64,000 bases of DNA from Lepidodermella squamata (lineage: Eukaryota; Animalia; Gastrotricha): the NCBI GenBank assembly GCA_047495785.1, contig JBLDXI010000007.1, positions 2,852,001 through 2,916,000 on the forward strand, read 5' to 3'. The stretch's first letter is position 1; the number at the start of each line of letters is the position of its first letter. Position numbers and translations under genes: made by a program. The notes under the pieces were generated by a model. The model had not been told where the DNA came from. It did not search any database and saw nothing but the letters and a program-made list of their open reading frames with translations. Shown piece after piece: positions 5,101 to 59,137 of the stretch.

Positions 5101-7417
5101 ATGCAGTATACTCGCCACGAAAAGTTGATCTGTCTAGGCCGATGTCCGATTGCTAGTCAAGATTTCTACGAAGAATTCAGCGCTTGTGCTGATTTTGTTT
5201 GCGCAAATGTCGCACACAGTCTCGGCCTTGAAAATTGGAAAATCGTATTTCGCGGCGATGAGAGTGAAAACTGGAATTTTTCCCTCCACCTCAACCACCG
5301 AGCTCTATTTTCAACGCTGTCACTCACCTTTGGGCCGTTGCCCTCGCTTGAGGCGAGGGAGAATATGATTCATGGCATAATTGAAGAGTTGTCCAGTGTA
5401 TTTTTCACGACTCAGAATTTGTTCTTTGTCGTGGCAAAACCGACGGAAAAATTCAACCAGCAAGCTCAGTTGCTACTCTGGATGACCGTAATCGGCAGGG
5501 ATTTGAAAAATCTCAATCGAACGCTGCAAGCTATTCATTCTGAAATTCCGCAGTGCAGCATGCAGACGCTGCTGATGGAAGCTGTTCGGATTCAGTTTTG
5601 CGAGGGCGTGACCAGTCTCCTTAAATACGGTGCTTTCGCGGATAAAAGCGTGTCGACTGAACCGACGTTGAATCTCTTCTACCGACCTCTTGCTACGCTG
5701 ACAATCGAGTGCTGTGAGTACGTTTGCGGCTGTCTCCGGCGGAATCGGTGGCGCAACGATCGCGAAGATGTCGCGAGAAAATTCGACCTGATTTCAAGGT
5801 AATAATTGTGACGGTGACGGTTACAAAAGACTGAGTATAATGAAGGGATTATATGAAGTGAACAGTATAGGAATTAAACAGAGATTTATCTGAAAGAAAT
5901 CTTTAAAAATATGAAATCACTTACTTGTCATGGCGATTATTCTCCTCGGGCTGCACGCGACATTTGTCACCCAGTTGGCATGCTCTGGGTCATGCTGACC
6001 ACGGACAACGGTATTGAATTCCATTTAATGTTATACAAATTTTCCTAGAAAACAGAAGGAGTTTATTCTTGGTAGCCTTGCGCCTTGAAATTTATTTCAT
6101 TTGATTTTTGGCATTCTGAGACTTAGCTAACAGCAGCTGATGAGCATTAGGCTTCGCCGTTTCCTCGCCGCCGGCCCGGGATCTCGTAATTCTCGCAGGC
6201 TGCTAATCCGATTATTATTTTGTATTTTGTACGGTGTTGCCGCAGGAACATTTGCCGAATGAAAATAACCAATGAATATAGAACAGCATTAGGGTGGAAC
6301 GAGTTACTTATGCCACAGTGTGAAATACGTTCTAGGCTCGATTTGCAGTTTCAAAGTTTTTGATGGTGCCATTGACTGCTCCACATTGGTACCCGCGGTT
6401 TCCTGATTTTGAGATGCTGCCTGTTTATTCTTTCCCTTCTTCACTGACTTAGCATCCGGTTTTTGATCAGCTTCATCGAAAGTTTGAGAAGCAGCCTGAT
6501 GATCAGTAGAGCCTCTCCGCTGTCCTACCTGGTCCAGTGGTTTCGTTTGACGCCGGGCTTCGTTAACTAGGCGGTTGCGCTCCTTTTCTTCCTGAAGAAC
6601 CTCCGGTCGAGCAGCTTCCTTGGCAGCTAATTTCGTAGATATATATTATTATCAGGTTTAAATTAAGGTTTAAACTAAAACTAAAACTAACTTGGAAAAT
6701 GTGAATGCAAAATTTACATTTTTTTCATTTTTTAGGGAGCTGATTTCAAACTACGAGCGGAAAACCTTGTCCACCGATGACTCGAAGGCCCTTCAATACA
6801 CTTTTCTCCTCGCCGGACTCAACCGAAGCACCACTGAATTTCTCATCGATCAATCTACCCCAATTCTATCGACAATCCACGATAAAACTCCACTCGACTT
6901 CGCCTTTTCAGATTTCTTCAATCGTTTCCCGGACCGGCCCACCCTCTTCTCTACCGGTCTAGCCGCAGCTGGTGTAGCCTACGCGATTCTGCCGCTACTT
7001 CGCGCGGGCTGCCTATGTTCCAATAGTCTGGTAGAAATCGTCCGCAATTCCGCCCATTTGTTCAACTCCGACTTCTACACCGTGCAATTGTGGGGCAAAC
7101 CTGGCGTGATGATTCACCTTATGGCAGAGGCGAGTCGGAATTCTTGCTCGCTGAATATCGCCGAGCTACTCGCTGTCCCGAACAATTTCGAAGATGAAGA
7201 GCATGAAACTGCGGCGATTTTCGTCCAAACCGCCGTTCAGCTGTACCCGCGCCAGTTGCAGGCCCTGAGCCGGCGTGCTATCCTAAAGCAGCTACCTTAC
7301 GGGCTGAAATCGCGGCAGGATGCAATCGATAGTCTGATGCTGCCCAGGTGTCTCCAGGACTACCTGAACTACCGCGAATTCGACGTCCTTCCACATACCC
7401 TGTCGCTTTCACTGTGA
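5101..7417 (+). CDS. SOCS-box protein A (ankyrin-like motif, Cys-rich N-terminus); exons 5101-5798, 6736-7417
   Basis: Phase-2 intron joins the two ORFs in frame. Ankyrin-like TLLMEAV...VTSLLKYGA. C-terminal YPRQLQALSRRAILKQLP...LMLPRCLQDYL is SOCS/BC-box-like. Confidence 0.8.
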
Positions 7418-7605
7418 AATGTAAAAATAACTCACTCGATATTTCTACGTTTTATTTTGATTTCTTTCAGTGCAAAACAAAGTTATTAATATAGTGGGTC
7501 GCTTTTTTTGGTTTTGCGTTTTCAATGTCTGAAAATAAGCTTTATTGTATTATTGGTGATGAATTAAAATTCAATTTTTTCGGCAATTTCATTTAGATTT
7601 TTTCT

Positions 7606-9012
7606 ATGCGTATTACGTGTCATGAAGATTGCATTTGCGGGGGTCAGTGCGTACTGACCGGGCCGCGGTACTATTATACCTATATAATTCTGCTGAAATC
7701 GCTCGTCCCGAAAGTTTGTTCACGGCTTGGTTTGAAAGAATTCCCAATCGCGTTCGGAAATCAACACCACGAGCATTGGGTCGATTCTTTGGTTTTATTC
7801 GATTATTACCTCGATTTAAATAATGACGGTGTAATTATAAAGCCTATTGAACCCGAAACTGGGCTGAGGTAAAACTATTTTATATCGAATTTTTCAGGAA
7901 TTTATTTTCGTTAATATAGGATTGCAGCTGAACTACTCAACGAAATAACTGTGAATGAAACGAAAAATTTCTCGGATTTCAACCCGGCTGCTCACTTAGT
8001 ATTATGGCTTTCAGTAAAACTGAAAAATATCGCCTTATTATCGAAAACTTTATCGACGATTTCGAATGAAAATATTCCGAGATGTGTGCTTCAATCTTTA
8101 TTGCTTGAAGCCGTTGATAAGAAGTCGTACGAAGCCGTTAAAATTTTGCTACAAAACGGCGCTCGAGCTGATCGAAGGTTGAGAAAATTTGAGGAATCTC
8201 GCGATTTCCGGCCGATTTCAGTTTGCATCCGCGAATTCGACCCGCGGATGGCCGATGAAGACCGGGTTGAATCTGAGAAAATTCTTAGGTTGTTGCTGGA
8301 CAGTTGTCAGAAACCACCATTCGCCCCGGATCCTGATCACGATGACGACGTCCCATCTCTCGGTTCAACTGCCTATTTAGGCCTTGATCTAACGGAATAT
8401 TTACTCGAAAAAGCGGGGAATTACTTGAATGAAATTTTTACCCAGGATATGGATGATAACGCGAGTACGCCATTGGATGAGGCTTTTTCGCTTCTTCAAG
8501 CGACTCTAGTCACCCTGCCACAGTTGATCGATCAATTGAAGGCTGATCGAAACGGCGGCGGGACTAGTTTGGAGCAAGTAATTGCCGAAAAATTTACCCT
8601 GGCAATTTTACCGATTTTACGCGCCGGAGGGCGGTCTTGTAAACATTTTGAGGACGAATATTTGGAGCGATATTACGATATTATCAACCAAATGGCGAAA
8701 GATCGGATGAATGAGCAATTTTGGGGCCGAGAAAATGTTGCGATGGAGCTGATTATCGAATCACGGGGCTATCATTCGAAATCGTTCGATATTTCAAAAT
8801 TCAGGAATTTCAAGAAAGATTTGCCGTTTATTGCGGCGGAAAAATTATTGGCGAAATCATTTCCTCGCAGTTTGAAATCAACTGCTCGCCGGGTTGTGCT
8901 GCAAAAATTGCCGCTGGGATCAAAATCGCGACGTGATGCGATTGAAAAACTGGATATACCTGATATTTGCAAAGACTATCTGAATTTCAAAGAATTTGAA
9001 CTGAAATCGTGA
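7606..9012 (+). CDS. SOCS-box protein B; exons 7606-7868, 7920-9012
   Basis: 51-bp in-frame-joining intron. LLLEAVDKKSYEAVKILLQNGA is ankyrin-like; C-terminal FPRSLKSTARRVVL...LDIPDICKDYL. Confidence 0.82.
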
Positions 9013-9116: not shown

Positions 9117-12100
9117 ATGAATATTATCGATCACAAAGAAAGCAGATTTTGCTGCGGGAAGGAGCCGTGTCCAATCAGTGATGAGGCATTTTTCTGTGAT
9201 GTGTTAGAAGCCGCCGGGTCGCTGATTCACGAAGTTCGAAGCGAACTAGGCCTAGGCCGTGAAGATATGAGCCTCATCGCTTACATGGACGTTGACAATT
9301 TCCAGGAATACAGCCATTTTTGCATCAAATTACTCCCGCGAAAATTATTTGGGTCGAATTATATTTTCATTTGCCTGAGCGATGAGTCATTGGTCTCGAA
9401 AGTTTTGACCTGTTTGATCGAAATTTTGGAGATGAGACGTTTGCGGCGCAAATTTAACCCCGAATCACTGTTTGCTGAGGACGCGATTGCTGTTTACTTG
9501 TCGTTTGTTGCCAGGAACCGTGAAGCGTTCAAAGCTGCAATTTCATATGTGGACGGTTTCATGCCCGATTGTTTTCAGCAATACATTTTGAAGAAAGCTA
9601 TCGATCGCGATTTGGACTGGGCTGTTCTCGATTTGGTGGCTATCGGTGCTTCTAGCCGTCTAGTTTATCATGGTGAGTTCAATGTTATTTTCATTTCGAT
9701 TTTCTCTGTATGACCTTGGTAACAACTGAATTTTTTGAAAGATTTCATCCAACGATCGATTTAAAATTTGATTTAATTTAAATTAATTCTGATGCGTGTG
9801 ATTTGGTGGCAAACAAGCATTATCAAATTCAATGAACCTCAAAAAACCAGGCGCGCCGTTGACCAACATGTTTCGGCTTTTATTAAGCCATCATCAGGGT
9901 CTACAAAAAGCTACCAAAACAAAAATATATAACATCAACAACTAAATTACCTCGCGTTCCAAACACCAAACAGAAAAAGACAGGAATTATTAATTAAATA
10001 TTATCGCTATTATCATCAATGAATCTATTAATGCACATAGTATTAATCTTGGGATCGAGAGCTTGGATAAATAATTTTTTCAGTCTTAAGCAGTCGATTA
10101 GGCTCTGAGCATCGGTGGAGGATAGTAACTGTGAAGGGTGGATGAGATTTCCTGCAAGAAACAAAATGTGCCGGGGGGAACCCCCATACTGTCACCGTTT
10201 GTGAGTTGACAAGTTGTTTGTTTGTTTGTATGCCGCCAGCGTGCGCACAGTCTGTGCACGCCTGTTGCGCACTCTTTTAACTATTCAGGTTTGGTTTTTG
10301 GATGTAAAACTTGGCGATAACTGAGTAGTTAACCACCGCATACATTACAGATGTACGCTACTTCTTGCCGGTGACCGAAAATTAACCTTTTCTTGAGATT
10401 TTATACTTCAAAGCGTGGTTTTATTCAGCAATCACATAGTGAGTAAACAATCAAGTATTGGCCAGCAATTGACGTGGCTTCGACTCTGTCAATTCTGTCG
10501 ATTTCAGCCCGCCGCAGAATGTCGATGTATTGATCTGCATTGACTCGACCGAGGCACTGCTGTTCGATGCCGAATCATGACCATCTTTTATGATGCCGGA
10601 GCAACACTCGTCAGAGAAAGACACACAGCGTTAATTGTGAATTGCCTTGTCGCCTGCATTCAAGTTGCGCTTTCAGACCGCCGGTTTGCGGCGAATACCA
10701 TTGATTCTCAAGTGTAGTGAGACGGTTCGGGCTGACGGTTCGGTTATGTGTATTGCTGCCCGACTCGGTGTTTCAGCTGATCCAGCGGCAATCTCCGTCC
10801 AAATCGTAGGGAGAGACACTGTGTTTTTACCTCCGAAGCCGACCCCATCCCCTGCTCATTCTCCCGGACGCTGCACAGCCACGTGCCAAAACCCATTGAA
10901 ATCCATTACGCCGTTCACTGAATTAGTTGCTTTTAGGCTCTAACTATCCCGAACAGTTCGTCGCTCCCGATGTCCGTACCCGATCTTCAACGAACTGAGC
11001 CTCTTCAGCTCCCAGAACCGCCGAGTTCTCCGTTCTCCGGCGCGTGGTAGCCGATAATGATCGCCTTGAGACTCTAATACCTATTGGTTGGATGCTATTA
11101 GTCCCATTTTCTACGAGTGGGGAAAGGATGTCAAGTAGCACCTCTGTTGTACTCCCTTGTAATCCACACCTGTGATCTCATCTGTTCACCCAGAGCCCTT
11201 GGTAAGGCACGTAGGCTGAAGATGTCACCTCGTTTATAGTAAGGGAGCTACTTTGTCAGAGCCAGAGTAAAGGGCTCAGAATGGAATCGATCACTGCCTA
11301 GGCTTGCCTTTAGCGGCAACAGTTCCACGTCGCCATGTTGCAAAACAAAACACTCAGCGCAATTCTGGCAGTCCGTTTCACGACTACCGCGTCAGAGGCT
11401 CTTACGCTGCTATCACCGGCAGTTTGACGCGTCCGAACTTGATCTGCGACGAACTGGATCTCTACAACTCCCAGAACCACCGCGTTCTCCTTTCTCAGGT
11501 GCGTGGTAGCCGATACTGCGTGTATCGCCTTGAGACTTTTATAACTCCCTGGTTAGAGGCCTTATTAGTCCTATTTTTTAAGAGCGAGGAAACGGCCACT
11601 TGACACAGCGACAGAACTACCGCTAGGGATGGTTCCGCGGTCCTACTACACTATCTTCCACGAACTGAGCCTCTTCAACCCCCAGTATCGCTGAGTTTTC
11701 CGTTAGCCAGCGCTTGGTTCAATTTAGCATACACTTTGACTCGCCGATAGCTTTCTACAACTCCCGGGTTAGATGGTATTAGCCCTATTTCTAAAAGTGC
11801 CGATCTCCTCCGTATTTCTTACCGTAGTTCTACTGTAGTGAGCACGTTGCCATTTAGCACGGTACCGTAGGTGGACAGAAAAATTGACGGTAGCAGATGC
11901 CATTTGAACCCTCAATTCAACACTTGAAGCCAGGCACCTTATTAACTGAGCTATCGTGCAGTTTCGGACATGCTAGTCTTTAAAGGTGTCCCTGAATAGT
12001 TTTTTGCGTTAGTTTCAAACAAGACAGTTTCTGGAAACTTTCATTTATATAGAAGAAAGTTTTCAAGTGAAAACTATTACACCGTGCTGAAGAACTACCG

Positions 12101-15100
12101 TTCCGCTAAGCTCTACCGTAGTCGTGGGTTAGAACTACGGTACATATGAGACCCGCCAAGCGATTTCGGCCCTATCTCGGTGTTCAATCATTCGAAAATT
12201 GGGTGTTGTGCAATTGGGACTATGCGCCAGATGTTGTCTTTTCAAATGATTAATAAGGGACGAAATCGCTTGGCGGGTCCCAAATGTACGGTGTGAATCG
12301 GTGGTGCTAGGGGTGTCACCTCTTTTGTACATAATCTGCTTAACTGGTCTCCTCCGTTTACCCAGCACCCTTCGCACGGCGAAGGACGCCATCATGAGAT
12401 TCCGTCCTACGACTATTACGTCAGAGTCTCCATCCTCGAGCACCGCTGTCGCTTGCCAGGCGTGCCTTTCTTCATGTGGCGCATTCCACGCCGCTGTGAG
12501 GTAACACCGTTCGCTTAGTGCTGCCGTTGCGTGAGGATATGGAAGGGTACAGTGGATCTTGGTCTTGGCATGCGTAGAGATTACAGCAGGCTCGATTCAG
12601 GCCTTACCCGATAGTTCCGAGGTAGAATTACCATCATTGTTCTCTTCAGTCTCAAAGGTTCCCCCCGGCGCTACTGCGGCAGCTTTGCTGCTGCTGTTGC
12701 CAATTCACCAGCACTACCAGGTTTAAGACTATTAGTTGTGTAATGATGTTGCGCAGTTTTATTTGCCAACGGTACACTGGTGCATCCAACGTAGATCTGG
12801 CAACATGTGTTACACGTTGAGCGGTAGATCACATTTTGTTTGATACAGATGACTTCTCTAGAACTTTCTGAGGACTCATGAATGCAGCCCTAGCATTTAT
12901 GAAAAGTGTGAGAATAAGCAGAAAAATTAGAAGGAACAGTAATCTTGAGTGGCATGGACTTCCAGATTATCTGAATTTGGTGTTGAAAAACTCGGAAATT
13001 TTCGTTGTGGCGAGCTTTACAGCCATGGCAATTTCCTCACCCAGATACGGGAGTGACAATCGGACGACATTCTGAGACTTATAGCAGGTAGCAGGAGGAG
13101 GCGTGATCACGCGTCGAATTGAATTTTCAATCAACTTATCATCATAACCACTATCACGAGCTAAAAAGCTTTTACTACCTATCACGAGCGCGCCCTTGAT
13201 AAAAGATCATAAACCTGATAAAAATTATCCGGTCAGACCTATAATCAGGTCTCGCAACACACCCACTGAGGCTATTGATACGCTCCTAGCGTTTATTTTC
13301 AAGCAATATATGCCTATGATCACTGCCAAGTTAAACAACACTTCTGAATTTGTTAATTTCGCAATTGAATTCAAGACCCGATCCAAAAACAAATCATCGT
13401 CAAATTCGTAAGTTATTTTTATACTATTACCCTCTTCTGAAATTTCATATTTCAATGTCCCTCTCAGGTAGGATGTCTTGATTATCAATAGTTAGCTCGA
13501 ATTTTGCAGGGGGTTGAATTTTCAGACATTTTTGTCTATCGGTCTGATCATGTGGATCAAAAATTGAAAAAATTGATATGAAATGTGCCGCCCCCGAAAT
13601 TTTCGTCTTATTTCATCGCCAGTACCCCTTGGACGAGTTTTTCCGCTTGTTTTTCGACCTTGGTCAGTTTTTCTCGTATAAGGAGTCGGTAATCGGGTGG
13701 ACACTAATAATCTCAAATGCTCAAATGTTAATTACGCACTTTCCCTCGGTTTGCCAAATACGGCACATTTGATGGAGACTTTGTCGCCCCGCAAGATGAA
13801 ACGTAGTGGCGACTGATATCGGGTTCTATATAATTTAAGAAAAGCACTATCTGTCAAGTTAAATACCGAAGATGCCAGGAATACAACACTCTGTGACTAC
13901 TTTTAGAATAACGAAGAATAAAACAAATTGAAATTCCATTAAATTGAGCTTGCTCATGTCAGAGCATGTTCCAAAATTCGAGAGTTAGTATGTTTTATCA
14001 AAGGAGAAAAAATAGCAGAGGGTTAAAGAGTACTCATCGAGCCTTGTAAGCTCATGACAGGTACCGAATCGCTGATAATTTGAAGATGGTTTTGGTGACG
14101 ATGTATAAAAAGCAGGAACAGATTGTTACCGACCAGTTACGCTTTTAATCGCAATAATGGCGATGTAGAAATACTGATGATCCTAAAACTTGTGGATTGT
14201 GGAGCCGCAAGTTGAAATAGGAATGAAAGACGCTATCACCACGCCATCTTTCACAAAAAAATACTGCCAGACCACGGCTATTGGGCTAAAAGGAAGCATC
14301 ATCGCGAATGAATCAGTACATTATGATTTTTCTTTAGATCGAATTTGCAATCGATAGACTGAAAATTAGGATATTCTCCCAACACTGGACGTCTGAATAA
14401 GACCCCTTTCTCCTCTGCCCCGTGTTCTTTCCGATGAAAAAATTATTGAAGAAAGCAATTAATCCCCCCATTTGATTCCTCGTGGTTTGGGCGAACAGAT
14501 AGACGTCGAATGATTTGTTTTGCCAAGCCATTAGGGCTGTGTGTTGACCGGGTGACGAAGCCGATAAGACTTTCAAACTCCCATGCACCATAGTCCCACT
14601 AACTGCATTATTATCTAACAAATATGGGAAAGTGAGAGAAGAAGTGGATATTGAATGTCATGTTATCGACGCCATAATGCTTCTGCAAAATTTATTCCCG
14701 GCATTTTCAAGCCAAGCAATGTCGCAGGCTGGCTGAAGCGCTCGATGAACAATAGATGATGCTCGATTTTTTCTCAAAAAATTTCTGCATGGCAACCGGA
14801 CCTTCACAGAGTAGAATCGTCGAATAGTCGTGAGCGTGCCATTTGCTTAGGTCTTCAAGTGATGGAAAGCTGTTAGTGCCAGACGGAATAACGTCACTTC
14901 GATCTGCGAATGCTCCTGAATGTCAGCTTGTCCCCGTGTCCCAATTTATAGATCGTCCATAGCATTAACAACTTCCGAACGACACCAATGAGTGCAATAT
15001 TATGCATCGGTTCCAATAGGATGTTTTTAGTTGGATCCACGTCAGGAATGCCCAGTACAATAGCCCAAGCGAGAATTCCATATCTCCAGATTGAGCTGCA

Positions 15101-18100
15101 TCCCGCCAAGATTCCGAAGTGGATAACACCCGTGAGGAAACACTGTTTTCTTGTTTTTTGAGTCTCCTTGACCTACTATGGAGCAAATTGGACAGCAATG
15201 ATAGCCAGCGTACACTTTATTTCACACTACTTTCACACTTACCATCTTCTCGCAAGGCGGAGTGGAATGATGGAAATTGATCAGCGCAGTCTTCAATATC
15301 TTCTGGCGAAATTTCGATCTGGCGAGTTTTATTACCGTATCAATTTCCCAATTCATCAAGTCGAAAGTTTGAACTTGTTTCGAAGTTTTACCAAGGAGAA
15401 ACATCGATAGCCAAATTTAGTTGCAAAACGATTTTCGCTTGGCCCATTTTCACAGCTAGTGGGTTGGAATTTTATTAACACTTTATCGTCCAAATACGCA
15501 TATTTGCGTATACGAAAATTTGCAGAAAATAGCCGTATACGCATATTTGCGTATGTGAAATTTTGCAGAAAATAGCCGTATACGCATATTTGCGTAGGCG
15601 AGAGTGATGCTTTTTTGCGATTTTTTTCTTCGTGAACTGAAGACCTAAAAATCTGAAAACCTCATGGTTTAAGTCAATTAAGACCTGAAGAACACAAATT
15701 TTGGGTCAAAATCGCGAAAAAATGCTTTATTGATCGAAAAATCAGTGATTATCGATTATCGATTATCGATTTTATATCGATCCTGAATTTTTTAAAGATA
15801 GTCTATCAGATTCGCCATGTTTCAAACCATTAACTCAATGGCTTGTCATATTTTTAGAGAACAAGGAAAGCGCAATACAAAAATCAGAAATAATAAAATA
15901 TTGAAATATTTGAAATATTGACAAAAGTAATAAAATAATTTACAGCGAGAAATATAACCTACCTGAGAAATCATCGCTTTCAGAAGACGGACTTCTTTCC
16001 AGCGCTTCATTTGCTAACACGGTCACTTGTTTGAATCGCGACATTTTCGAATCAAGTTAAATTAATTTGAAGGTAATTGAAATCGAGAATGAGAATGAGA
16101 AAAACGAGAAAATTAGAAAAATACTTTAATTTCAGTCACACACCTGCACCATCTGCTATCGACCGTATACGCACATTTGTGTAAACATTATTTTTGACTT
16201 CACGCCGTATACGCATAGTTGCGTAAAGGGGATTTGCAAGATGGGGCCGTATACGCATACGTGCGTAAACACTGTTTGCAGTAAATAGCCGCATACGCAG
16301 ATGTGCGTAAGGCTTTTGCAAGATGGGGCCGTATACGCAAATATGCGTAAGGGTCTTTTGGTTATTACGTAATATGGGTGCATCCAAAAAATCCGGGACA
16401 TCGACCATTGATCTTAGAATTCGATCCTCTTTCAGAAAATATAATAATCTCAGAGTCGAATTTTCAGTTCGGCACGTCTAAAATGGCCCTTCTCTACGGA
16501 AAAGGCTCTTCTAAAAAGCCCGGACGATAAAGTGTTAAATTAAGCTTGCTCATGTCAGAGCATGTTCCAAAATTCGAGAGATAGTATGGTTTATCAACGG
16601 AGAAAAAAAATACCGAATCGCGTAATAATTTGAAAATTCGAGATTGTGGAGCCGCAAGTTGAGATGGGGATAAAACACGCCACCTTTCACAGAAAAAGAC
16701 TGCCATGCCACGGCTTTTGGGGCTAAGGAAGCATCGACACGCGAACGAATTATTACACACTGATTTTTCTTGAGATTGAATTTGCAATCGTTAGACTTGA
16801 AAAGCAGAATACTTTCCCGACACTGGACGTCCGAATAACCCTCCTTTGACAGCTATAGCATTCAACTCTGCCCCGTGTTCTTTCGGACGCAAAAAATGAT
16901 TGGCGAAAAAAATTGACCTCGCATTTGATTCCTCGTGTCAGAAGGGCGGACGGCACGTCAAAATAGGTAATGAACCGCTGCAAACAGGCGAAGATGCTCG
17001 GAGCCTTAGTCGACCTGAGCGGATCCGCCACGGGACCTTCGAGAAGGCGTCAAACAAGGTGAGCACCCAGCGGTGCCCTTGCGAGCTAGGCGGCTCGATG
17101 GGCCCGACGATGTCCATGGCCACGAACGGCTCGTCCACCGGTCGGATGGGCACCAGGGGCACCGTCGTAGCTTTGCGGCGGGCGCACGTCAGACAATCCC
17201 GGCAGTGTCGCCGAACGGAGCTGTAAAGGTTTGGAAACCAAACGTAGTCGCGGAGGCGTTCGATAGTCTTCTGGCGGCCAAGATGGCCCGAAGCCGGAGC
17301 GTCGTGGGCGATGCGGACCGTGTCGGGCACGTACGTATCCGGGAAAATCAGTCAGAGTCTGGAGAAGAGGCGGTCGTGCACCTAGACTAGGATGTCCGCT
17401 TTGAGATGGCCTTTGCCGACCCAACACATCGAAGCAAAGCTTTAATTTGGCGAATTTGACAATCAGAAGCCATACTTACTTGGCAAAGGGCGAAAACCAG
17501 GTAAGGTCCAATGCCGTATCAGATTTAAGTCACTAAAAACAAAAAACAAAATTTGCCACAACTCAAACGCGGGGAAAACTTGCGAATTCTGAAGAAAACT
17601 AACAGAGGCTGTTGTTGAGGCAAAGCAAGTCCAGAGTAGAACCGGAACAAATTACGGAAAAAGAAATGATTCTTTATAATACAATTTGCACTATATTGTA
17701 GTGCACTACGGACAAGTATCGGTGCTGGCCCTCAAGTTTTTGCCAGAAAGAAGCAGCAAATCTAAGCAACGCGAATTTGGGTTTTTGCGATTGCTTTTTG
17801 TGCATAGCGATGAGGAAGTCAAACAAAATCTGGGCAATCAGCGGTAGTCCTCCGTGGGAAAGCTCGTTTATTGGTTTGTTGCGCATCATCTCGGCCATCA
17901 ATGTGAACTGCAAACCCTCCAGTATTGAGTATAATATATCGAAGTCCGATTTTTCGAGTTTTAAGGCACAAAAGCTGCAACATCAATAAGATCAATACGA
18001 GTATAGAGTATATTATATCGAAGTCAAATTTTCCGAGTTTTGAGGCACAGAGCAATATGAAAAGAATTAGTGGCGAAGAAGTACCAAGAAAACAGTCGGT

Positions 18101-28000: not shown

Positions 28001-28400
28001 GAAAATCCTACATAATTTAATATTGGGAAGAAAAAATAAAAAAATTTAGTAGAACCTTTGCAAAATGGTAATTGAAGAGGATGTTTTAATTTTCGTGATT
28101 CTTAAGAAATTAGAATCGAAAATCGAGTCGCAGCAAAATTGTCCGTATTGTCCGTATACAGGATTAGTTCGGCATTATGGCAATTAAAAATCTAAAATTT
28201 TGTGGCATGAATCCATGTGATGCTAATTTAATGTGCTAATTTAATGCTAATGTGATACTCAGAATAATATTGAATATTTTCTGCCCAAAAGGCAGGCTTC
28301 AAAAGAACGAGGATCCTTACATGCTTTGAAAACCCTTATAAAATGTATTGTTTTTATTTACATAGATCTTAATTACAGGACATACTGGCTCTTCGATAGA

Positions 28401-32876: not shown

Positions 32877-32947
32877 ACCCTATTAAATTTTCGAATTATT
32901 CTATTTATTGTATAATTTTATACTGAATATACTGGCTCTTCCTTAGA

Positions 32948-41446: not shown

Positions 41447-42218
41447 ATGGATGATAAGTTTGGAGAAATCAATAAATCCTGCGAATCGGATAAAGACCTT
41501 GCCCAAGCCATTCGAAAATCGTTGAAAAATTCTAGTTGCTCACCAGAGCTCGAAATTCTCATCGAACAGTATGTTGAAACTCACGATTTCGCAAAGCTGG
41601 AAATCGCCCTGAAATGGACCCACTCACTAGCGGGCGGAGACTCAAGAGTTGCTCTATGCTCTATTCCCGGTCGAAGGTTTTCTGATAAATCCGGCGAAGA
41701 GAATTTTTTACACCCCGCTATGGTCGGCTGTTAATGCACTTTGTATCGATGAAATTGAGGGGAAATCTGAAATTATTGCCAAAATGACCCAATTTGTCAT
41801 TTTGCCGCTGCTTCGAGCCTTACATCCTGATCCATTGTTTAACTTACTCAATTATGAAATGGATCCAAGCATGATTTCTCTTTGGGCGGACTTCGAAGAT
41901 CTTAAAATATGGAATAACTGCCAGTTTCTTGATTTGTTCATCGAAGCGAGGCGAAAATCGGGTTTCAAAGTTGCAGATTTGTTAAGGCGGCTCGAGAATA
42001 CCTGGGAAAATGGAAACGCGACCCGTGATATATGCGAGCGGTTTGCGATCGCTCTACGTGATGTTTACCCGCTTCAAAACTTGGCTCGAATGGCGGTTCT
42101 CAATTTACTGCCAGTTGGCCCGAAACAACGCAGAAGTGCGATTGAGAAACTTGATCTGTCAAAAGCGTTGATTGATTTTTTGAATTTTACTGAGTTTGAA
42201 ATTTTTGACTCGAATTAA
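41447..42218 (+). pseudogene. SOCS-box paralog L with large internal deletion and frameshift
   Basis: N-terminus matches E up to DSRV, then jumps to PVEGFLINPAKRIFYTPLWSA in another frame; ankyrin-like region missing. Confidence 0.85.
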
Positions 42219-47841: not shown

Positions 47842-50072
47842 ATGCCAATATTTGAACTCGTTTTTGGCAAACGAGCGACACCAGGCTCTCCAACTGTCAA
47901 AGAAAAGCTTCTTGAGCTGAATAAGGTTGGTGGCGTAGAATTATTCCTTACGGATGTTCGGGCTCGAGCGTTCGGTAGTTTCCGAGAAGTTCAAGCCCAT
48001 GACGAGAAAATCTCCAATTTATTGCGCTTGAGTCATGTATTGGTGCAACAAAATCGATTTGACGACGCATTCAAAGCCCTGAACCACATCGATTCAATGT
48101 TTGGCTGGTCTGAATCGTTTTTCAAACTCATGTCTAAAGCCTCGCTCGAAGCCAATAATTTCATTGGTTCCTTTGTGTTTTCAGAACTTGCGAGGAACTT
48201 GTTTAATCATGACGATTCCTTCGAAGAATGGAATACATGTGTGAAAAATGTTTTGAAAAATGCAGCCGATGGCAGCACGTCACCGCGAGGTGATTTCGAT
48301 CGATTTTCCAAACTTATGTCTTGTCAGCTTGATCATTATGCCAGCTTTGATAGTGATGATTGGGACGAGTTTGGATTCAAATTATCAACTGACTTGCTGA
48401 GTCTCGATAAATCAGCTGACGTAAAAGTTGCCACTGAAACCTTTGAAGCGATCAGCCATTCAAAATTGCGACAAATTACGTCGAATTTATTTGTCGAAAA
48501 CTTATCGCCAAGCCTCGTTCGATGCATTTGCCTACTTTTCTACAACAATTTCAATCAGCTTGTGAAGTATCGTGAAAACTTGAACTTCGACTTGTATGAA
48601 CGCATTGTGGTTAAAATTCTGGAATCTGCTGTTACCGAAGCTGGTTTTCGAGCGGTAATTGAAAAATCAACTGCTTATTCCATGCTTTTCGCATGTATTT
48701 TCACATTTTGTGCTGCTGAAGCGCACTTGGCGATAAAAAATCAAGATTCATTCGATTTAAACTGGGCTGCTAAACAGTTGTTGTTACACCTTTTGGCGAA
48801 TCCGCCGCAAAATTTTCGGCGAATTGAATCCTGTCTGATACTGCTGGTGCCCACATTGAATAAAAGCGGCGAATTGATGCCTGAAACTCTCGACTTTATT
48901 TCACTCTCGATGTTATTAATCGCAAAATCGCCCGATGAATCGATTAGAAAAAACTTCTCATCAATCGTCAATTTTGTTGCTGGTTTAATTTCTGATGAAA
49001 ACAATCTATCGGCAATCGCTAGAAATGGAACCCTACCCCTGGCCTTAGCTATGAGTTACGACACAACGAATTTCGATGCGATGCATATCGTTAGCGACGC
49101 GCCAAAACAACCACTTTGATGACTCATTCGATCGTACTTTGACGAGCCGAACGTAAAGGAGGAGTACGTGCGGCTTTTTGAGCGCTGATCGTACTTATCG
49201 TAATTTGAAAATACGTTCAAGGGTCGAACGTACTTTCCATAATAAAGCTATAAATAGTAATGTGGTTGTTTTGGCGCGTCGCTGACGATATTACTTTTTC
49301 TAAATTGCTTTCAAACCTTGAAAGGGAAGATCGATTGTTCTTGGCAAATGAAAAGCCATTCGCCGATCGACTTTATGAAGCCAACGATGAATTTTTCAAG
49401 GATGGGCAAAACGTTGTTTTTCATGGCCAGCCAGCCTTGCAAATTACGCAGCTAATTCAGGCTGATATTGGCGAACCCGGAAATTCGTATTATTCTAACC
49501 TGATCTTCGGAAATCATAAATTTATCAGAGCTGCATTAACGAAAGCGCCATATGGCCCTAGTATTGCCCTCCTGCACCATTTGCTTCTAGGTGCAAAATG
49601 TGATATTCGCGAAAAATGGCGAAAAATGTTTACGGGAAATATTTTCGTGAAATTAGCTTCGAAAGCTAAAAGCCATTTGCTGCAAAATAGAACGCATTCG
49701 GCTGATGTGTTTCAAATGATGAGCGCTACGCATAGCTTGGGTATTCTCAAGGAACTCTGCTCCATCGCCCCTCGAGTTGCCAAAGACTTCACGTTGCATG
49801 ATTTTATGTCTTTTTATTGGGCATTTTCGGAATATTCCAATTCCTGTCCTGAATTGGAGGAGTATGAGATGGATTTTTTCCAGGAACGTGACCTGGCTTT
49901 GGGCGTCCTCTTGGCGACTGTTGTTGAACTCAATGAGCAGGTTAAGGTAGATCTACTTCGAAGCAGGACGATCCTTCGTGGCGTGATTTTCAAATTGACT
50001 ACTGCTTTTCGTGAGCTAGAAGAAAGATCTGCGTCGCGAAACCGAGCGGATCTTGAAAAACTTGGCCAATAG
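47842..50072 (+). pseudogene. TPR-like/helical-repeat protein O (subfamily 2) interrupted by a 199-bp MITE
   Basis: Removing 49089-49287 plus one ATAT restores …FDAMHITFSKLL…, colinear with N. Confidence 0.85.
49089..49287. mobile_element. MITE with ~26-bp TIRs and 4-bp ATAT TSD (Sola1-like by TSD, tentative)
   Basis: ATAT|CGTTAGCGACGCGCCAAAACAACCAC…GTGGTTGTTTTGGCGCGTCGCTGACG|ATAT. Confidence 0.88.
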
Positions 50073-50337
50073 TAGCAGAATTAAGACTGTTGTTACTTGA
50101 TGAGTAATATATGCAAGCTAATTGAATAAATTTGTTGGAGTGCTGTTTTTGTGACTAACAGATTTTTTATTCTAGAAATTTGAATTTCAAGGGTAAAAAT
50201 TCGTATTTTGTCGTCCGTAACGATTTTTGTTTTTTTTTCGATAGTTACAGTGCTCCGCAGCATTTTAATTCATAGTTTTCTTAATTGAAAAACTATTGAA
50301 TTTCTACGTGTTTTTAGTTTTTGATAGTGATTTTACT

Positions 50338-53300
50338 ATGCAACAGCAGCAAACAGGACTCTGCTGCGTAAACGGCGTCCGAATCACGCCGAGTTGCGAT
50401 GCTGAAAGCGCCGAATTCCGCAAAAGTGTTCGCGATTGCCTCAGCGCATTGCTGCCCATTTGTGAGCAGAAACTCGGCTACCAACCTGGGTTTCTATCCT
50501 TAGTAACCGACTACGACGGATTTGTCGATCTGAACGAGCAGTTTCTCGAGTCGAATGACGCTGATGTGTTAAATCGAGATTTCAAGTCAATAATCATGTT
50601 CATCACTGTTTACTGCGCCTGGGGTACTAAAACGGAAGTACGTGCCCCAAAGCTCCTCCCAAATATCTACATCGCTTTATTTCTCGCTGTTCGTGAAAGC
50701 GAATTCGCCCTTGCTAACCTGATTAGTTACTTGCATAATCTTGCATAAACGTCATCCCTTCGTGCTTTGTTCGAACGCTCGTTGAAGCTTTCTTCCTGGC
50801 GATCAGCCGCAGCGAGAAACCTCTGAATGAATCATGAATCATCCGCGCGAACTCTGGATCTTCTGACGAACAATTTATGGACGCCAGGGCAGCGATGGGC
50901 TACGCTTCATAGCTACGGCGGATTATCTCAAGGATTTTTTGACGGTAATCTTGTGTTATTTAAATTTAGCATTTCAAGTTGAAAACGTAACATCAAGTTT
51001 GAAAAGAATCCGTTGGCACCAAATTTAGGAAAGAAATGATACATTGTAAATAAAAAATTGAAAATTAGCAGTTTTGCGCAACATTTTGCTCACTCTTTAC
51101 ACAAAAACATCATAATCGTGCTCTCAATCAAATAGTTATTTTTCATCCTGTTATTATCATACCCCGGTCTTTATAAATATTAAACAGCTTTTTAATTGAA
51201 ACAAGCGAAGAAAAGCGCCCCGACCCAGGCGAACCCGGAAAACCAGACAACTGAGAACCCTTGCAAAGGGCTCCCGAAGCCGGTTTCCCGGGCGGCCGGG
51301 GCGCGGTTTCGACGCAAGTTCCATACTACTGGAGCGGAAAAGCAGCATAGCTACGAGCTGATGAAAGATGGCTATGGCAGTTTATCGTGAAAGCATTTTG
51401 GTCGCCGATGTGCAGTGCGATGACGTTTGCCGCAAATCCATCCCAGCTGTATCACGGATTGTACCGTTAACTCACGCATGGAATAGTTCGAGTAGATGAA
51501 ATCTTTCGCACCAAGTCCTATCATGCTCATCATTCGCTTGGCCTTCTCGCGATGCGATTTATCGCCGAGTTTCCGGGACGAAATGCGCGGCGGCCGATGT
51601 TGGGCGTTTGATGAAAGTGAATGCATTTCGCAGATTTGTCACCTCCGCGAGGACAATCCGCCATTTGCTCGTCGTTAAGCTGTTGCTGACCAATAAACAT
51701 TCGCTGTTACAAAGGAGCGTTAGCATAGCAAATCTGGATTTTCGAAAAAGCTCACCTTTTTGAACCGACAGAAGTACCAGCAGATCGAAAAGACGTCAAG
51801 ATTTGCGTAAACGAAATGCATTGCTCTGTCACTAGAGCTAATTGTTCCTTGGCTGTGGCAGAGTCGAAATTTCTCCGTCCAAGATCTTTCATCTGGTCGT
51901 TGCGCTTGAAGCTGAAATCGTATGAGAGGAAGTTGCTGGCAGAAAAACAAAGCAATTGTCAAACTCACATTTCTTCGAACAGCAGTTTGATATCGGCATC
52001 GCTTAGTTGCAGTTCCGGGTACACGGTCTTCTTTTTTCTCAGCTGGCTCAGATTCTGTTTTAGCTGTTTTATGCTCCTAACGAAGCATGTCGATGCCAGC
52101 TTTTTTCAGACGTTCGCGGCCAAATTCGGCACGAACATGGTCTAGAAATTGCGAGAGAGAAGTGTCAAGTTTCGAAAGTCAACAATGCTTATTAAAAATA
52201 TTACCGAAAACAGCGGCTTGAAGGTCCTTGTCTATCTGCCACTCCGGCCGGGTGGCGGTACCAGAGGCTACGGCTCCCGGCTTGCGACCACCCAAGGTCC
52301 TTTGAATCATCTCGGCTTTAGAAAGGAGGAATAGTCCACAGGCATACATCTTTGAGTTTACAAGAGAACGACTTTCTCGACGTAAATGCAGCGAATCATC
52401 TTTAGAAATGGAACGTCCAAACATGACAATCTGTGACCTGTGACCCTAAAATTGAAAACCAATATAAGCATGAAGTACGAGGAAGGATGAAGTAATTACT
52501 AGGACGACGTCGTGACGGCTTTCGGCGTTTCGACGATTCTAGACCCTAGACTGAATACCAACTGCTATATAGCGAAGAACAGTAGCTGTGCTTCGGGAGT
52601 TGCGCTGCCTGCGCAAAGGTAGAGTTGTTCAGATTATTCTTGCGCAACTCGAAAAATTCGAGATTTTTGACACGGCGTTTGATTTCGGCCATGAAATAGT
52701 CCTTAACGCCGGTTAATCGATCAGCACCTTCCTTATAGCACGGCTTGAAAGAGATGACCGATTTCGAAACTTCGTCGAAAGTTGCAGTTGAGGTACACTC
52801 CGCAGCGTTGCACCGGCGGTATTAGGTGTCGAGACAGGCGCCTTTCTGAGTTTCATCGCCCTTCTCGAATTTCAGCAAACAAGTTTCTAGACCGCTTCGA
52901 ATGAGTTCCAGGCACTCGACTTAGTAGGGGGACGTCGAAGTCCGAAATTGAGTGAGCGTCAAGCCAACTTCGGAAAAAGCACACACCAAGAGCACAAGAT
53001 GATAAACTGAAAACTGAAAACAGTGGTTTATCACAAAACATGAGATTGAAATCAGACCCGGGCCGACCCAAGCTGTGGAGCAGTTTAGGTTCAGAAGTGA
53101 AGCTTTTATGCAGATTTATGGCACTCTCGAGCGATTTTGAATTTTTGCCTTTTTGACTTTCACCAACGATGGCTCTCTAACGGTGAGGAATTGGCTCATG
53201 AGATTTTGCGAGCTTACTGGAATGGGTTCTGACTGTTTATGGTCAAAATATGAACCCGGAGAACCTCATGGTTATGAAATGACAAGCGTTTGAAAAAAGT

Positions 53301-54617
53301 GGAAATTTTTTATGCAGATTTAGGTTACCTTACCCTATAAAAACGAGGATTTGCGTTACTAGCGAATAAGCTTCAGCCAATCTAGTTTATCCGACGCAAG
53401 TTTGATCTTCCTGTAGCGTGGATTCATCGACACACTTTTCCCGGCAAACGGTGAGAGAATGCAATTTTTAATCAGTAATTGTTTCCCTTTTTTCCAGTTC
53501 TTGAAATCAGCAAGTAATCAGCAAGAGGAATCACGCTAGAAATTAAAAAGAAGTTGGTAGAATCAAAGTGCCCTTCCGTCCACCGAAATCGGTGAGGCTT
53601 TTCAGCGACTCTACTGGGTTTCCAATCTTTGAGGAGGGTGGGTGCCTCCCGGAAGTCTGCAATTTAAAACTAAAAATTCTGAAGTAAAATTGTTAACATG
53701 GTGAAATCCACCGATCGTTCATTTTCAAACACTCTTGTTCAAATGCTGGGAAATTCGAAAAATTAGCCGAACCCCACTTTTCACTTGTTAACGGTCCAAT
53801 TGATTTTTTTATGACTAAACCGATTTTTATGATTTATTGACAAATTTCGCTTCAATTATTTCTAATCGACATTTTAGGAATGGTCCACTCGATATTGAGC
53901 GGCTTCAAAACTCATTGGGACCAGCGTGAAATCGACCACCCTATACGTGGTCACATTTGGGACATTTTAGTCCGCAATTACCTCGCTTCAAGTCAACTCA
54001 TCGGCTTTTGCGAAGTTATCCATTACATGCTGCCTTTTTCCGCCTCAATCCCCGATTTTCAGCGTCGCATTTTCGACATGTACTTCATGGCTGCTGAGGC
54101 GAGGGATCTTACGTGGTTTGACCTTTTCCAGCGGGACGGTTCGCCGTTGAGCTTTAAAGACGTCACTGATCAAATTGTCAAGCTCATAGTCCTCCCACTG
54201 GCCAGATCTGGTTACGAACAAAACGGGTTTTATTTTGAAGAAAGGAATTATCGAATGTTATTGGAACCTCTGGCTCGACTTGATTACATCTACTCAGCCG
54301 AGTGTGAACAGCGATACCTCTCATTAGCCCTTCATTTCTTCGATTTGAAAGGCTACAATCAGTCGGAAATGATCGGAGTTTTCCGCTCTTTGTTCACGCG
54401 GGAAAATTCCGGGAAAAATGAGGCTTTTGATCGAATCGATTCGATGTTGAGATCTTGTTATCCGCTGAAGCTGATGCAACTCGCTCGCAGGGAGGTGTTG
54501 ATTCGCCTCCCACTTGGATTTGAAGATCGGCCCAAGGCGATCTCGCGATTACTGCTGCCTGAAATCTTGAAAAATTATCTCAACTTCAGCGATTGCGAAG
54601 TTGGCGAAGCTGAGTGA
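50338..54617 (+). pseudogene. Divergent SOCS-box paralog P; exons ~50338-50944 and 53878-54617, exon 1 frameshifted
   Basis: Cys-rich N-terminus like A-C. IPSCFVRTLVEA motif lies in a shifted frame after ~50745; 7-bp duplication atgaatc. Exon 2 has IVLPLARSG and YPLKLMQLARREVL…LLLPEILKNYL. Confidence 0.68.
50990..53800. mobile_element. Unclassified TE-like insertion(s) in the intron of P
   Basis: 2.9-kb intron vs ~50-bp norm; broken minus-strand coding-like segments; no clear TIRs found. Confidence 0.4.
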
Positions 54618-56439: not shown

Positions 56440-58470
56440 ATGTCAGTTTTTGAACTCATCTTCGGCAATGGGAGCGTACCAGGTTCTCCATTGGTCAAAG
56501 AAACGCTCCTTGAGCTGAATCAGACTGGTGGCGTAAGTAAGTTTCTCACCGATGTTCGAATTCGAGCTTTCGGCGACTTTCAAGAAGTTCAAGCTCGCCA
56601 CCATAAAATCTCGAATTTGATGCGCCTGAGTGAAGTTTTAATGCAGCAAAATCGGTTCGACGACGCATTCAAAGCCTTGAGCCAGCTGGACGCGATGTTC
56701 GCCTGGTCCGAGTCGTTTTTCAAATTAATGTCAAAAGCAACGCTAGAATCCAATCGTATAGTTGGTTCCTACATATTTTCATGGATTTCGGAGAACAAAT
56801 TCAGCCATGACGATCCGCTCGCCCTTTGGCACGAAGGAATTTCTCAAAAAGCCGCCGCTGGCGATAATTCATGCCCGACATTTCTAGCTGAAGTTGATCG
56901 AACTAGCAAAATCCTGGGCATGAGTCTTGTTGATTATTGCGCCAATTTTCAAAGCGATGACTGGGACGAATTTGGGTTGAAAACTGCAACTGCTTTATTT
57001 GGTCTTCCTAGAGAAATCAATGATGAGTCGTTGGAAATGGCGAGACTCAGCTTTGAAGCAATTAAATCAACGAAATTCTGCGAGCAGAGCTTTTCATTTG
57101 TAAATTTATCACCAAGCCTTATCCGTTGCATTTGTACATTCTTGTTCAATATCCTTCATTTGTCGAATTACCGTGGAAAGTTGAATTTTGACCTGTTTCA
57201 AGAAATTGCCGCGAAAATTCTGGAATCTTTAGCTACGGACGCTGGTTTTCGAGCCGCAGTCACCAAATCTAGAACCTATTCTCTGCTTTTTGTCATCATT
57301 GTCTTATTTTGCAAGAATGAGACAACTTTCGAGCTGAAAAATCGTGATTTTTTTACCGTCAACTGGGCAGTTAAAATTTTGTTGTTGAATATTCTGGCGC
57401 ATTCATCTCCTGATTTTCAGCGATTAGATCCCTGTATAAAATGGCTTGATGAAGCTCTTATTAAAGATGGCGGCGAATTGAGCCCGGAAAGTATTTATCT
57501 GCTTTCAATTTGTTTGGTATTGATCGCGAATTCGCCGGATGAACAAGTTCGGAAAATCGGCCCTTCTTTTATTCCGTCTTGCTCAAGACTTATCAATACG
57601 GATCACCACATTCTATCGCGAATCGTTCGAACTGGGACACTACCCCTTGCTTATGCGATCTGTTATGGTGACCCGAGTTTCACCTGGCTTCAACGTCTTT
57701 TTCCGTATTTTTTAACTACTTTGGACAACAAACATCTATTAATTTTGGCGAATGACAAAATGTTCGCCGATCAATTCTACGCAGCTGTTGACGCCTTTTT
57801 CCAAGATGGCCTATCCGTTGTTTTCTGTGGCCAACCCGCCTTGCAAATATCGCAACTAGTTTCAGCTGACATTTCTGAAACTGGAAATTCGTATTTTTCT
57901 CATCTGATTCTCGGAAATGATCAATTTATCAGAGCTCTGTTCTCAAAAGCCGCTTATGGACCCAGTAATGGCCTGCTGCACTCGGTGCTTCGATGTGCGA
58001 AAGATCAAGTTCGCGAAAAATGGCGAAAAATATTCGCTGGAAGGACCTTTGCGAAATTAGCCATGAAAGCAATGCAACACTTGCTTCACGAGAAGAACTT
58101 TCCCGATTTTCTTATGAAACTATCCAATGGAACATATGATCTGGGGATTTTATGCGAAATCTGCCGAATTACTCCCCAAGTTGCTAAAGAATTCTCTTTG
58201 AGCCAAATTCTGTCGATTTTCCGTGTCTTCGATGACGGCGTCAATAACCATCCCGTCATGGATCAAAATGAGGTGGATTTTTTCCAAGAGCGCGACCTGG
58301 CTATGGGTGTTTTCTTAGCGACCGTGATTGGTCTGAATGAGGAGATCAAGGCTGGCCTTCGTCGATACAGATCGATTCTTCGCGTTGCGATTTCTAAAGT
58401 GATCAGAGCTTTGCGTGAACTGGGGGAAAAGTCGCCCATACCAAAACTGGCCAATCTTGGTGAACTGTGA
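56440..58470 (+). CDS. TPR-like/helical-repeat protein Q (subfamily 2, 676 aa)
   Basis: Full-length paralog of N/O. Confidence 0.9.
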   Translation: MSVFELIFGNGSVPGSPLVKETLLELNQTGGVSKFLTDVRIRAFGDFQEVQARHHKISNLMRLSEVLMQQNRFDDAFKALSQLDAMFAWSESFFKLMSKATLESNRIVGSYIFSWISENKFSHDDPLALWHEGISQKAAAGDNSCPTFLAEVDRTSKILGMSLVDYCANFQSDDWDEFGLKTATALFGLPREINDESLEMARLSFEAIKSTKFCEQSFSFVNLSPSLIRCICTFLFNILHLSNYRGKLNFDLFQEIAAKILESLATDAGFRAAVTKSRTYSLLFVIIVLFCKNETTFELKNRDFFTVNWAVKILLLNILAHSSPDFQRLDPCIKWLDEALIKDGGELSPESIYLLSICLVLIANSPDEQVRKIGPSFIPSCSRLINTDHHILSRIVRTGTLPLAYAICYGDPSFTWLQRLFPYFLTTLDNKHLLILANDKMFADQFYAAVDAFFQDGLSVVFCGQPALQISQLVSADISETGNSYFSHLILGNDQFIRALFSKAAYGPSNGLLHSVLRCAKDQVREKWRKIFAGRTFAKLAMKAMQHLLHEKNFPDFLMKLSNGTYDLGILCEICRITPQVAKEFSLSQILSIFRVFDDGVNNHPVMDQNEVDFFQERDLAMGVFLATVIGLNEEIKAGLRRYRSILRVAISKVIRALRELGEKSPIPKLANLGEL

Positions 58471-59028
58471 ATAAATTTTTGCGATTGTGTCATTTTTGTA
58501 TTTTTTATTTCGGCAGTTTGAGCAGAAAAGTTTATTTTACTATCTGTTATATCTTCGGTTTTCATTGCGCGCTTTTAATCTCAATCGATTTTTTGTTATA
58601 ACTTTTAATGTATTAGTAGCAATCAATCGTTCCACATGGTTCTATTTAGATTTGTTATATGGTAAATAATGGTAAACATTGTCTTTGCTCGTATCAGGTT
58701 TTAGCTCTGGAAGGATGTATTTGCAACATTGCTATGGCTATTGCTCGAATGGCGAATCTCAAGTCGTAATCGCTGACCGAAGTTTTATATTTTTGTTCAC
58801 AAACGCGCGCACTTCGGACTGCGCGCCCGAAGTGAGAACAATATCCGCAATTCAATATACTTAGGCTTTCAAACGAGAGGGGGCTTATATTTCGGTAACT
58901 ACGGTAGGTTTTTGTTTGGAACTTGTCTGTATGATGGTCTGTAATTTGCGCTGTCTGAGTGCTGTTATTTCGGTTTCACGCACAGCTCCGCAAACATCCG
59001 AATAACTTAATTAGAATATTTTTTTTAA

Positions 59029-59137
59029 AGAACGAGGCCTCGCTTGGGCGTTTTCTTAGCGACCGTGATTAGCCTCAATGAGGAGATCAAGGTGGGCCTA
59101 CAAGACAGATCGATTCTTCGCGGTGTCATTTCAAAAA
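59029..59137 (+). pseudogene. Relic of the 3' end of a subfamily-2 helical gene
   Basis: gttttcttagcgaccgtgatt..cct..aatgaggagatcaagg…cagatcgattcttcgcg closely matches 58309-58385. Confidence 0.8.

Follow-up and report, generated by a model that had tools for sequence, protein, structure and literature searches.

Interleaved arrays of SOCS-box genes and an orphan family of predicted helical solenoids in the gastrotrich Lepidodermella squamata

When genes of two families are found side by side, copy after copy, the question arises of whether they act together or only multiply together. This question is raised by a stretch of 64,000 nucleotides from the gastrotrich Lepidodermella squamata (assembly GCA_047495785.1, 121 Mb in 151 contigs), which comprises positions 2852001-2916000 of contig JBLDXI010000007.1 (C7) and is referred to here as the window. 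In this window, genes for SOCS-box proteins (S genes) are interleaved with genes for helical proteins of about 650 amino acids (H genes). An earlier note, made from the letters of the window alone, had proposed that the two families constitute a two-component module. The families are physically linked. As for the meaning of this linkage, the evidence leans, with modest confidence, towards co-resident birth-and-death arrays of two unrelated lineage-specific families, with neutral co-residence as the default.

Extent and composition of the arrays

The genes were mapped by tblastn with representative S and H proteins, by hidden Markov models (HMMs) built from these, and by a separate HMM of the S N-terminal exon. 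Nine S and eight H genes were recovered in the window, every one on the + strand, and their order, sorted by coordinate, is SSSSSSHSHHHSHHHSH. The earlier note had read the same numbers, strand and order, and its remark on high divergence agrees with the 21-76% amino-acid identity found between paralogues. The span that it gave to the cluster, 5101-59137, encloses these genes and misses the ends. In the region examined, that is the window plus 200 kb downstream (264 kb in total), the window contains the left end of an S array that covers about 230 kb and has 41 genes, all on the + strand; this array continues for about 150 kb beyond the window and reaches about C7:3.07 Mb. The H array also continues past 59137, with fragments in the window up to position 63602 and further copies just beyond its end.

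The manner in which the two families are mixed speaks for the favored explanation. An obligate co-occurrence of about one S to one H fails, since the 264 kb contain 14 H genes, in four patches, among the 41 S genes, and arrays of a single family are found elsewhere. The order in the window resembles a random mix (8 runs vs 9.5 expected, P=0.32), and when all 264 kb are taken, H genes are found in clumps (12 runs vs 21.9 expected, P=0.0005). An S gene lies directly upstream in 6 of the 14 H genes. The S genes adjacent to H are spread over at least three clades of the S tree, the deeper nodes of which are weak, and the closest relatives of the clade comprising S4-S8 of the window, located at 76-93 kb, have no H neighbor.

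The genome-wide searches point in the same direction. SOCS-box genes are distributed over many contigs in dozens of clusters, at least 150 having been scored (the best 150 of 212 candidates); among these matches there are dozens of S arrays without H, and most S arrays are H-free. About 25 copies of H proper exist, all at C7 2.88-3.18 Mb. With the outside relative P0001, described below, as query, a wider H superfamily was detected, whose genes encode 700-780 amino acids; it amounts to about 50-60 genes, with at least 17 at C45:866-925 kb (an array present again on C59), several at C54:1.326-1.363 Mb, and smaller sets on C21, C23 and C2 (the gene content of C45, C59 and C54 is known from the genome search tables only). 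Independent occurrence of the families elsewhere had been named by the earlier note as something that would tell against its module, and as regards occurrence it is what was found: among the SOCS matches listed, none lies near the H-only array at C7:3.099-3.183 Mb or near the H-superfamily arrays of C54 and C21, although with 150 of 212 candidates listed some neighbors may be missing. No H-SOCS fusion was seen, H-superfamily and SOCS matches never falling in one open frame among the matches listed.

The SOCS-box proteins and the helical proteins

The SOCS box occupies the last ~45 residues of the S proteins. The Pfam family SOCS_box (PF07525), with a gathering cut-off of 23.5 bits, is matched above this score in eight of the nine S genes of the window (26.9-37.3 bits; 28.5-40.6 bits in the scan of genome contigs), the ninth (19030-19776) reaching 19.9 bits. 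In the S alignment A2, box positions L365, Q366, N367, A369, R370, L374, L391, L393, P394 and F400-F403 are invariant, so that the SOCS/BC boxes claimed by the earlier note are well founded. The BC box, which in known proteins contacts Elongin C through the consensus L-x-x-x-(C/A/S)-x-x-x-hydrophobic, reads L-Q-N-L-A-R-M-A-I in S and fits this pattern, with Ala where Cys is usual. The Cul5 box L-P-hydrophobic-P is the motif that selects Cullin 5 over Cullin 2. The corresponding part of the S copies is L-(S/G/D)-L-P-x-x-L-x-x-F-L, and because the first Pro of the motif is missing, replaced by Ser, Gly or Asp, the cullin partner of S is not readable from the sequence.

S genes come in two builds, either a single open reading frame (ORF) of about 420 amino acids or an N-domain exon of about 200-230 amino acids followed by a C exon of about 250-280. 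Upstream of the box, Pfam gives Ank_2 at E 0.039, below the cut-off, and a comparison of the S profile with PDB sequences reaches designed ankyrin proteins by a single motif (E 0.0035). The AlphaFold2 (AF2) model of S, with a predicted local distance difference test score (pLDDT) of 56, was too poor for a fold search. Language-model neighbors of S include ASB17, ANKRD9 and other SOCS-box clusters, with scores <0.9, too low to be taken as evidence. In recent S paralogues the ratio of nonsynonymous to synonymous substitution rates (dN/dS) is 0.38-0.63 in the N part vs 0-0.39 in the box part, as would be expected if an adaptor keeps its docking module conserved and changes its binding domain more rapidly. 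Judging from the SOCS box, the S proteins are most likely ASB-like substrate receptors of cullin-RING ligases.

The H proteins deserve the name of orphans that the earlier note had given them. No Pfam family matches them at E<=1, except TPR_19 at E 0.035 in one copy; Pfam detects no Arm or HEAT profile in their sequence; and a profile search finds no sequence relative in the PDB. The fold has been approached with an AF2 model of H2 based on A1, an alignment of nine H paralogues. This model (pLDDT 85.2; predicted template-modelling score, pTM, 0.81) is a wholly alpha-helical solenoid. Its first ~130 residues are like tetratricopeptide repeats (TPR), and residues ~130-653 are predicted to form a right-handed superhelix of three-helix repeats, of the armadillo-repeat (ARM) fold class. 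These residues align to the ARM-repeat proteins WAPL (Z 13.6), CIP2A (Z 12.9) and beta-catenin (Z 12.5-12.8), and the model also aligns to axonemal ARM proteins within the range Z 12-13.6; such values can be reached by helical repeats through their arrangement alone, so the match places H in a fold class without assigning it to one family. A Foldseek search with the same model returned generic solenoids, UNC-45 among them, and the comparison with the TTC12 cluster of the ESM Atlas gave a template-modelling (TM) score of 0.51, with a root-mean-square deviation of 4.9 over 414 residues. The confident model thus describes H as a TPR-like part followed by an armadillo-repeat solenoid, and a fold of this type, without catalytic signature, is most likely that of a protein-binding scaffold.

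Outside this genome, the H profile found only two matches in 1.84 billion representative proteins, both limited to the N-terminal ~280 positions: P0001, of 766 amino acids (E 1.4e-16), and a fragment of 160 amino acids. P0001 is encoded on a metagenome contig of 4949 bases and adjoins an ANF_receptor-type gene. Since it lies beside such a gene, it is taken to come from another animal, so that an unsampled related animal would carry the H superfamily. The tree of the H genes contains two well-supported clades, both present in the window: clade A (H1-H5) and clade B (H6-H8).

The possibility that H is simply an S protein without its box was considered and rejected, given that the profile-profile comparison of H with S yields a probability of 0.05%. 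There is a faint likeness of the H N-terminus (A1 columns 15-37: G-S-x-x-x-Q-x-K-L-L-S-L-K-x-x-x-D-x-x-K-F) to the Cul-box part of S (A2 columns 384-406), which at this probability is treated as chance.

Duplication, decay and the competing explanations

The recent history of the window is legible in one segment. The stretch containing S6 and H1 (25340-30446) and that containing S7 and H2 (30527-35002) are tandem duplicates with ~82% DNA identity (blastn), and synonymous divergence (dS) is alike in both families (S5/S7, a related pair, 0.36; H1/H2, 0.45). Other duplications involved H only, as in H2/H3/H4 and H6/H7/H8. The earlier note had described the whole cluster as co-duplicated; this is true of the one S+H unit and does not extend to a 1:1 pairing, the H genes being clumped as described above. 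The tree comparison that it had suggested is similarly divided, in that only the recent local unit is congruent between S and H, and the H-adjacent S genes belong to several clades.

Turnover is accompanied by decay. In all, 5 of the 17 genes of the window are clearly broken (H1, H4, H7, S6 and S8), in agreement with the frequent pseudogenes reported earlier, and decay affects about a third of the copies. In clade A, H1 (28401-30313) has a 1-nt frameshift near 30200 which costs it the last ~40 amino acids, and H4 (38908-40824) has an in-frame TAA at 40579-40581. In H7 (clade B, 47842-50072; tblastn, HMM) the reading frame is split by an insertion of ~190 bp, at 49093-49284, with 22-nt terminal inverted repeats, which looks like a miniature inverted-repeat transposable element (MITE) or a foldback element. 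The pseudogene S6 (25365-28000; SOCS box 34.7 bits), found by tblastn, consists of a 5′ fragment (25365-25511) about 1.4 kb from the remainder (26900-28000), which carries an in-frame stop at 27575-27577, and the pseudogene S8 (41447-42218; SOCS box 28.5 bits) has lost its middle and changed frame, the tblastn pieces (amino acids 1-79 and 200-412) being in different frames. S3 is probably disrupted too: its N-domain exon (9117-9713; N-domain HMM E 8.5e-43) is separated from its C exon (19030-19776), the one with the box below cut-off, by ~9.3 kb of transposon debris (9714-19029) which includes, on the - strand, an Integrase_H2C2 fragment of an LTR (long terminal repeat) retrotransposon (16941-17351, 63 bits), as well as internal repeats (14195-14484 and 16642-16937). 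dN/dS is 0.2-0.46 across all pairs, and therefore the intact copies are regarded as real genes under relaxed constraint.

The intact genes and the remaining copies, all on the + strand, are arranged around these. S1 (5101-7417) has two exons, the N-domain exon at 5101-5802 (N-domain HMM E 2.6e-44) and the C exon at 6692-7417 (SOCS_box 37.3 bits). It is followed by S2 (7606-9012; SOCS_box 31.3 bits, weak Ank_2), the N part of which is S1-like; its in-frame stops at 7870-7872 and 7912-7914, 42 nt apart, fit an intron of ~50 nt, and this pair hints at a genome with very short introns. S4 (20048-21313; 421 amino acids; SOCS_box 26.9 bits), included in alignment A2, and S5 (22076-23350; 424 amino acids; SOCS_box 28.5 bits), with one degenerate ankyrin motif, are intact single ORFs. 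The intact S7 (30527-31813; SOCS box 33.1 bits) precedes H2, its partner in the duplicated unit. S9 is divided between a weak N-domain exon (50296-50748; N-domain HMM E 2.8e-6) and a C exon (53880-54617; SOCS_box 27.8 bits) about 3.1 kb apart. The intact H genes are, in clade A, H2 (32948-34909; 653 amino acids), the copy used for the structure model, H3 (35673-37571; tblastn, HMM, tree) and H5 (42373-44352; 659 amino acids), and, in clade B, H6 (45452-47494) and H8 (56440-58470; 676 amino acids), the last three identified by tblastn, alignment and tree. Beyond H8 there is an H 3′-end fragment at 59020-59157 (tblastn; amino acids 614-660 of H8, 60% identity) and, at 63492-63602 (tblastn, HMM), a fragment of amino acids 156-191 with which a degenerate H copy begins that runs past the window end.

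Repeats are abundant around H2. This gene is flanked by foldback elements at 32640-32872 (41-nt inverted arms) and 35111-35308 (26-nt), and in the DNA run X1 the summed word depth climbs to 2000-8000 over 32.6-33.0 kb and over 35.0-35.4 kb, vs ~90 in unique sequence, which identifies them as high-copy repeats. X1 contigs over H2 itself (33190-34286) have a depth of 44 vs 85-89 in the flanks, about half, and one X1 contig joins 32880 to 35017, skipping H2, with only 22 letters on the shorter side of the joint. H2 may be subject to a presence/absence difference or lie in a strongly divergent haplotype. The foldback elements between genes are plausible substrates for unequal exchange.

The mechanism favored here is as follows. 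ASB-like SOCS-box genes, evolving fast, would have built up a very large tandem array in one orientation, and H would have been amplified inside it. Unequal tandem duplications, probably aided by the abundant small repeats between genes, would copy segments holding S and H together, or H alone, or S alone, after which decay and transposon insertion would act on the copies. At the protein level, the C-terminal BC box and Cul box of S would dock Elongin B/C and a cullin-Rbx ligase, the faster-evolving N-terminal part would choose the targets, and the H proteins would serve as cytosolic protein-binding scaffolds, roles suggested by the SOCS box for S and by the fold for H.

Several observations weigh against neutral co-residence. 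At C45:866-925 kb, co-oriented H-superfamily genes are again interleaved with SOCS-box genes (at 881.9, 895.9, 897.1 and 901.1 kb). Contig C59 (~52.6 kb) is colinear with C45:881000-933000, its H-superfamily and SOCS-box genes matching at a constant offset of ~880-881 kb, and because of this offset C59 is considered an unmerged haplotig of C45, so the two count as one locus. A genome search with S9 found its best relatives off the C7 array to be precisely these C45/C59 SOCS-box genes; the S-H linkage may therefore date from a deep split. Chance alone would place 0.32 H loci at a distance of 10 kb or less from a SOCS locus, vs 2 independent ones seen (P about 0.04, a rough estimate that takes arrays as units and spans compiled by hand from the search tables). 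Some of the S-to-H gaps are moreover very short, 155-400 bp. The genome-wide co-localisation asked about by the earlier note thus receives a mixed answer, with the C45/C59 repeat on one side and the H-only and S-only arrays on the other. Further haplotig-like pairs were noticed in the assembly (C23/C54:390k, C42/C86, C24/C121 and C7:1.66M/C16:0.90M).

These observations are the main reason for keeping a functional link between S and H, tentatively, as an unlikely but serious alternative: above all, the C45/C59 locus repeats the pattern, with a different H subfamily. According to this alternative, S and H would be a functional two-component system in immunity-like surveillance, in which diversified H solenoids bind inside the cell, as sensors, baits or guardees, and the linked SOCS-box adaptors control H abundance or ubiquitylate the targets captured by H. 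The co-duplicated S+H unit with its matching dS, and the fast turnover with elevated dN/dS in both families, would suit it as well; against it stand the many H genes without an S neighbor, the majority of S genes without H, the clumping of H with H, and the polyphyly of the H-adjacent S genes. The module of the earlier note survives in its descriptive half, and its functional half is not borne out, since the families also occur independently and H clusters with H. The prediction of a complex between H2 and the N part of S7 (amino acids 1-345) gave a score of 0.00, which speaks neither for nor against binding. None of the runs recorded as RNA contains the locus. Contigs of run X2, only guessed to be RNA, cover S7 and the 3′ part of H2 and none covers two intergenic stretches, an observation not counted as expression. 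A more specific version, in which the H superfamily of about 50-60 genes and one S subfamily form a lineage-specific surveillance system of solenoid binders coupled to dedicated cullin-RING receptors, linked since before the C7/C45 split, is more doubtful still.

Mobile elements provide another conceivable origin. The arrays might have been spread and kept mainly by such elements, with S and/or H as transposon cargo or domesticated genes and their co-location the result of shared insertion or capture. The integrase fragment and other debris within the array, the high-copy foldback elements that flank H2 and the one inside H7 could be read in this way, but the S and H copies of the window have no matching terminal repeats at their bounds, the duplicates are local and tandem with a similarity that falls with distance, and no transposase is associated with the units, all of which makes this origin improbable. 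Least probable of all is a toxin-antidote (gene-drive) nature, the cluster being such an element or the graveyard of several, with one family as toxin and the cullin-adaptor-derived family as antidote. The pair peel-1/zeel-1 offers a precedent for an antidote that arose from a cullin adaptor, and the tight linkage, the frequent pseudogenes and the possible presence/absence difference at H2 (half depth in X1, joint from 32880 to 35017) are compatible with such an element. Yet the predicted H fold is an ordinary soluble ARM/TPR scaffold without membrane or enzymatic toxin feature, each family also occurs alone elsewhere, and dN/dS is <1 in every pair. Known elements are, besides, single pairs and not families of dozens to hundreds. 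This reading finds no specific support here, and the family sizes and independent occurrence misfit the known pattern.

A few neighboring features complete the description of the locus. The left flank of the window contains genes for a bromodomain protein (37-720) and a rhodopsin-type receptor (3641-5020). Between the last two H fragments, at 59741-63287, there is a gene or genes with a Ser/Thr/Pro-rich mucin-like stretch (60861-61670) and domains without assignment, after which come the ligand-binding and membrane parts of a Cys-loop channel (62316-63287). The bromodomain, receptor and channel genes are the gene content of an animal. The S array is interrupted by three paralogues, each encoding four MAM domains (248 bits), at C7:3070898-3072985 and at 172-175 kb and 228-231 kb of the larger region, two of the three on the opposite strand, and by a CUB-like ORF. 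The G+C content of the window is ~41%; no tRNA gene was found in it, and the nematode SL1 leader was not present anywhere in the genome searched, which sets it apart from typical nematodes that use SL1.

Comparison with known systems and biological meaning

The ASB proteins, receptors of the Elongin B/C-Cullin 5-Rbx2 ligase, are the nearest parallel to S. Both have a C-terminal SOCS box with conserved BC-box and Cul-box positions, and the N-terminal part of S appears helical with an ankyrin-like motif. Unlike ASB proteins, S has only one recognisable and degenerate ankyrin repeat, Ala in place of the BC-box Cys, and Ser, Gly or Asp in place of the first Pro of LPxP; moreover, a homologue search with S5 in a large protein collection, covering proteins of 0.55-1.75 times the query length, found no sequence relative outside this genome. 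Numbers differ as well, since humans have 18 ASB genes and this 121-Mb genome has at least 150 SOCS-box genes.

That cullin-RING adaptors can expand within one lineage is well known from Caenorhabditis, through its F-box and MATH-BTB genes (PMC8120010, PMC8665587). As in the S arrays, these are hundreds of tandem and fast-diverging substrate receptors with many pseudogenes, in which a conserved ligase-docking box is combined with a faster-evolving binding domain. Here, in contrast, the docking module is a SOCS box and a second, orphan, non-adaptor family has been amplified in the same arrays. Full-text literature searches turned up no paper on a similar expansion of SOCS-box genes, which is no proof that there is none.

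In its predicted architecture, an N-terminal TPR-like part followed by an ARM-type superhelix, H resembles the TPR and ARM scaffolds UNC-45 and TTC12 and ARM proteins in general. It differs from UNC-45, TTC12, beta-catenin, WAPL and CIP2A by having no sequence similarity to them and no UCS or other functional motif, and by its restriction to one lineage, in dozens of copies. With peel-1/zeel-1 the locus shares the tight linkage of a cullin-adaptor-related gene to an unrelated lineage-specific gene, together with weak signs of copy-number polymorphism; it is unlike that system in having large families instead of a single pair and, according to the model, a soluble scaffold in H instead of a membrane toxin.

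Conflict, whether genetic or between host and pathogen, is repeatedly signalled by large, rapidly evolving families of cullin-RING adaptors, most of the known examples being F-box and BTB proteins. The 150 or more SOCS-box genes of L. squamata would be an independent case of such adaptor expansion, built on the Elongin B/C route. The H superfamily, for its part, is by its model a well-folded solenoid family nearly absent from public protein data, and it shares its arrays with S genes at two loci. If S and H are independent, the window would offer a clear example of how segmental duplication can make unrelated families look paired; if they work together, it would provide a tractable new model of diversified binders wired to the degradation machinery.

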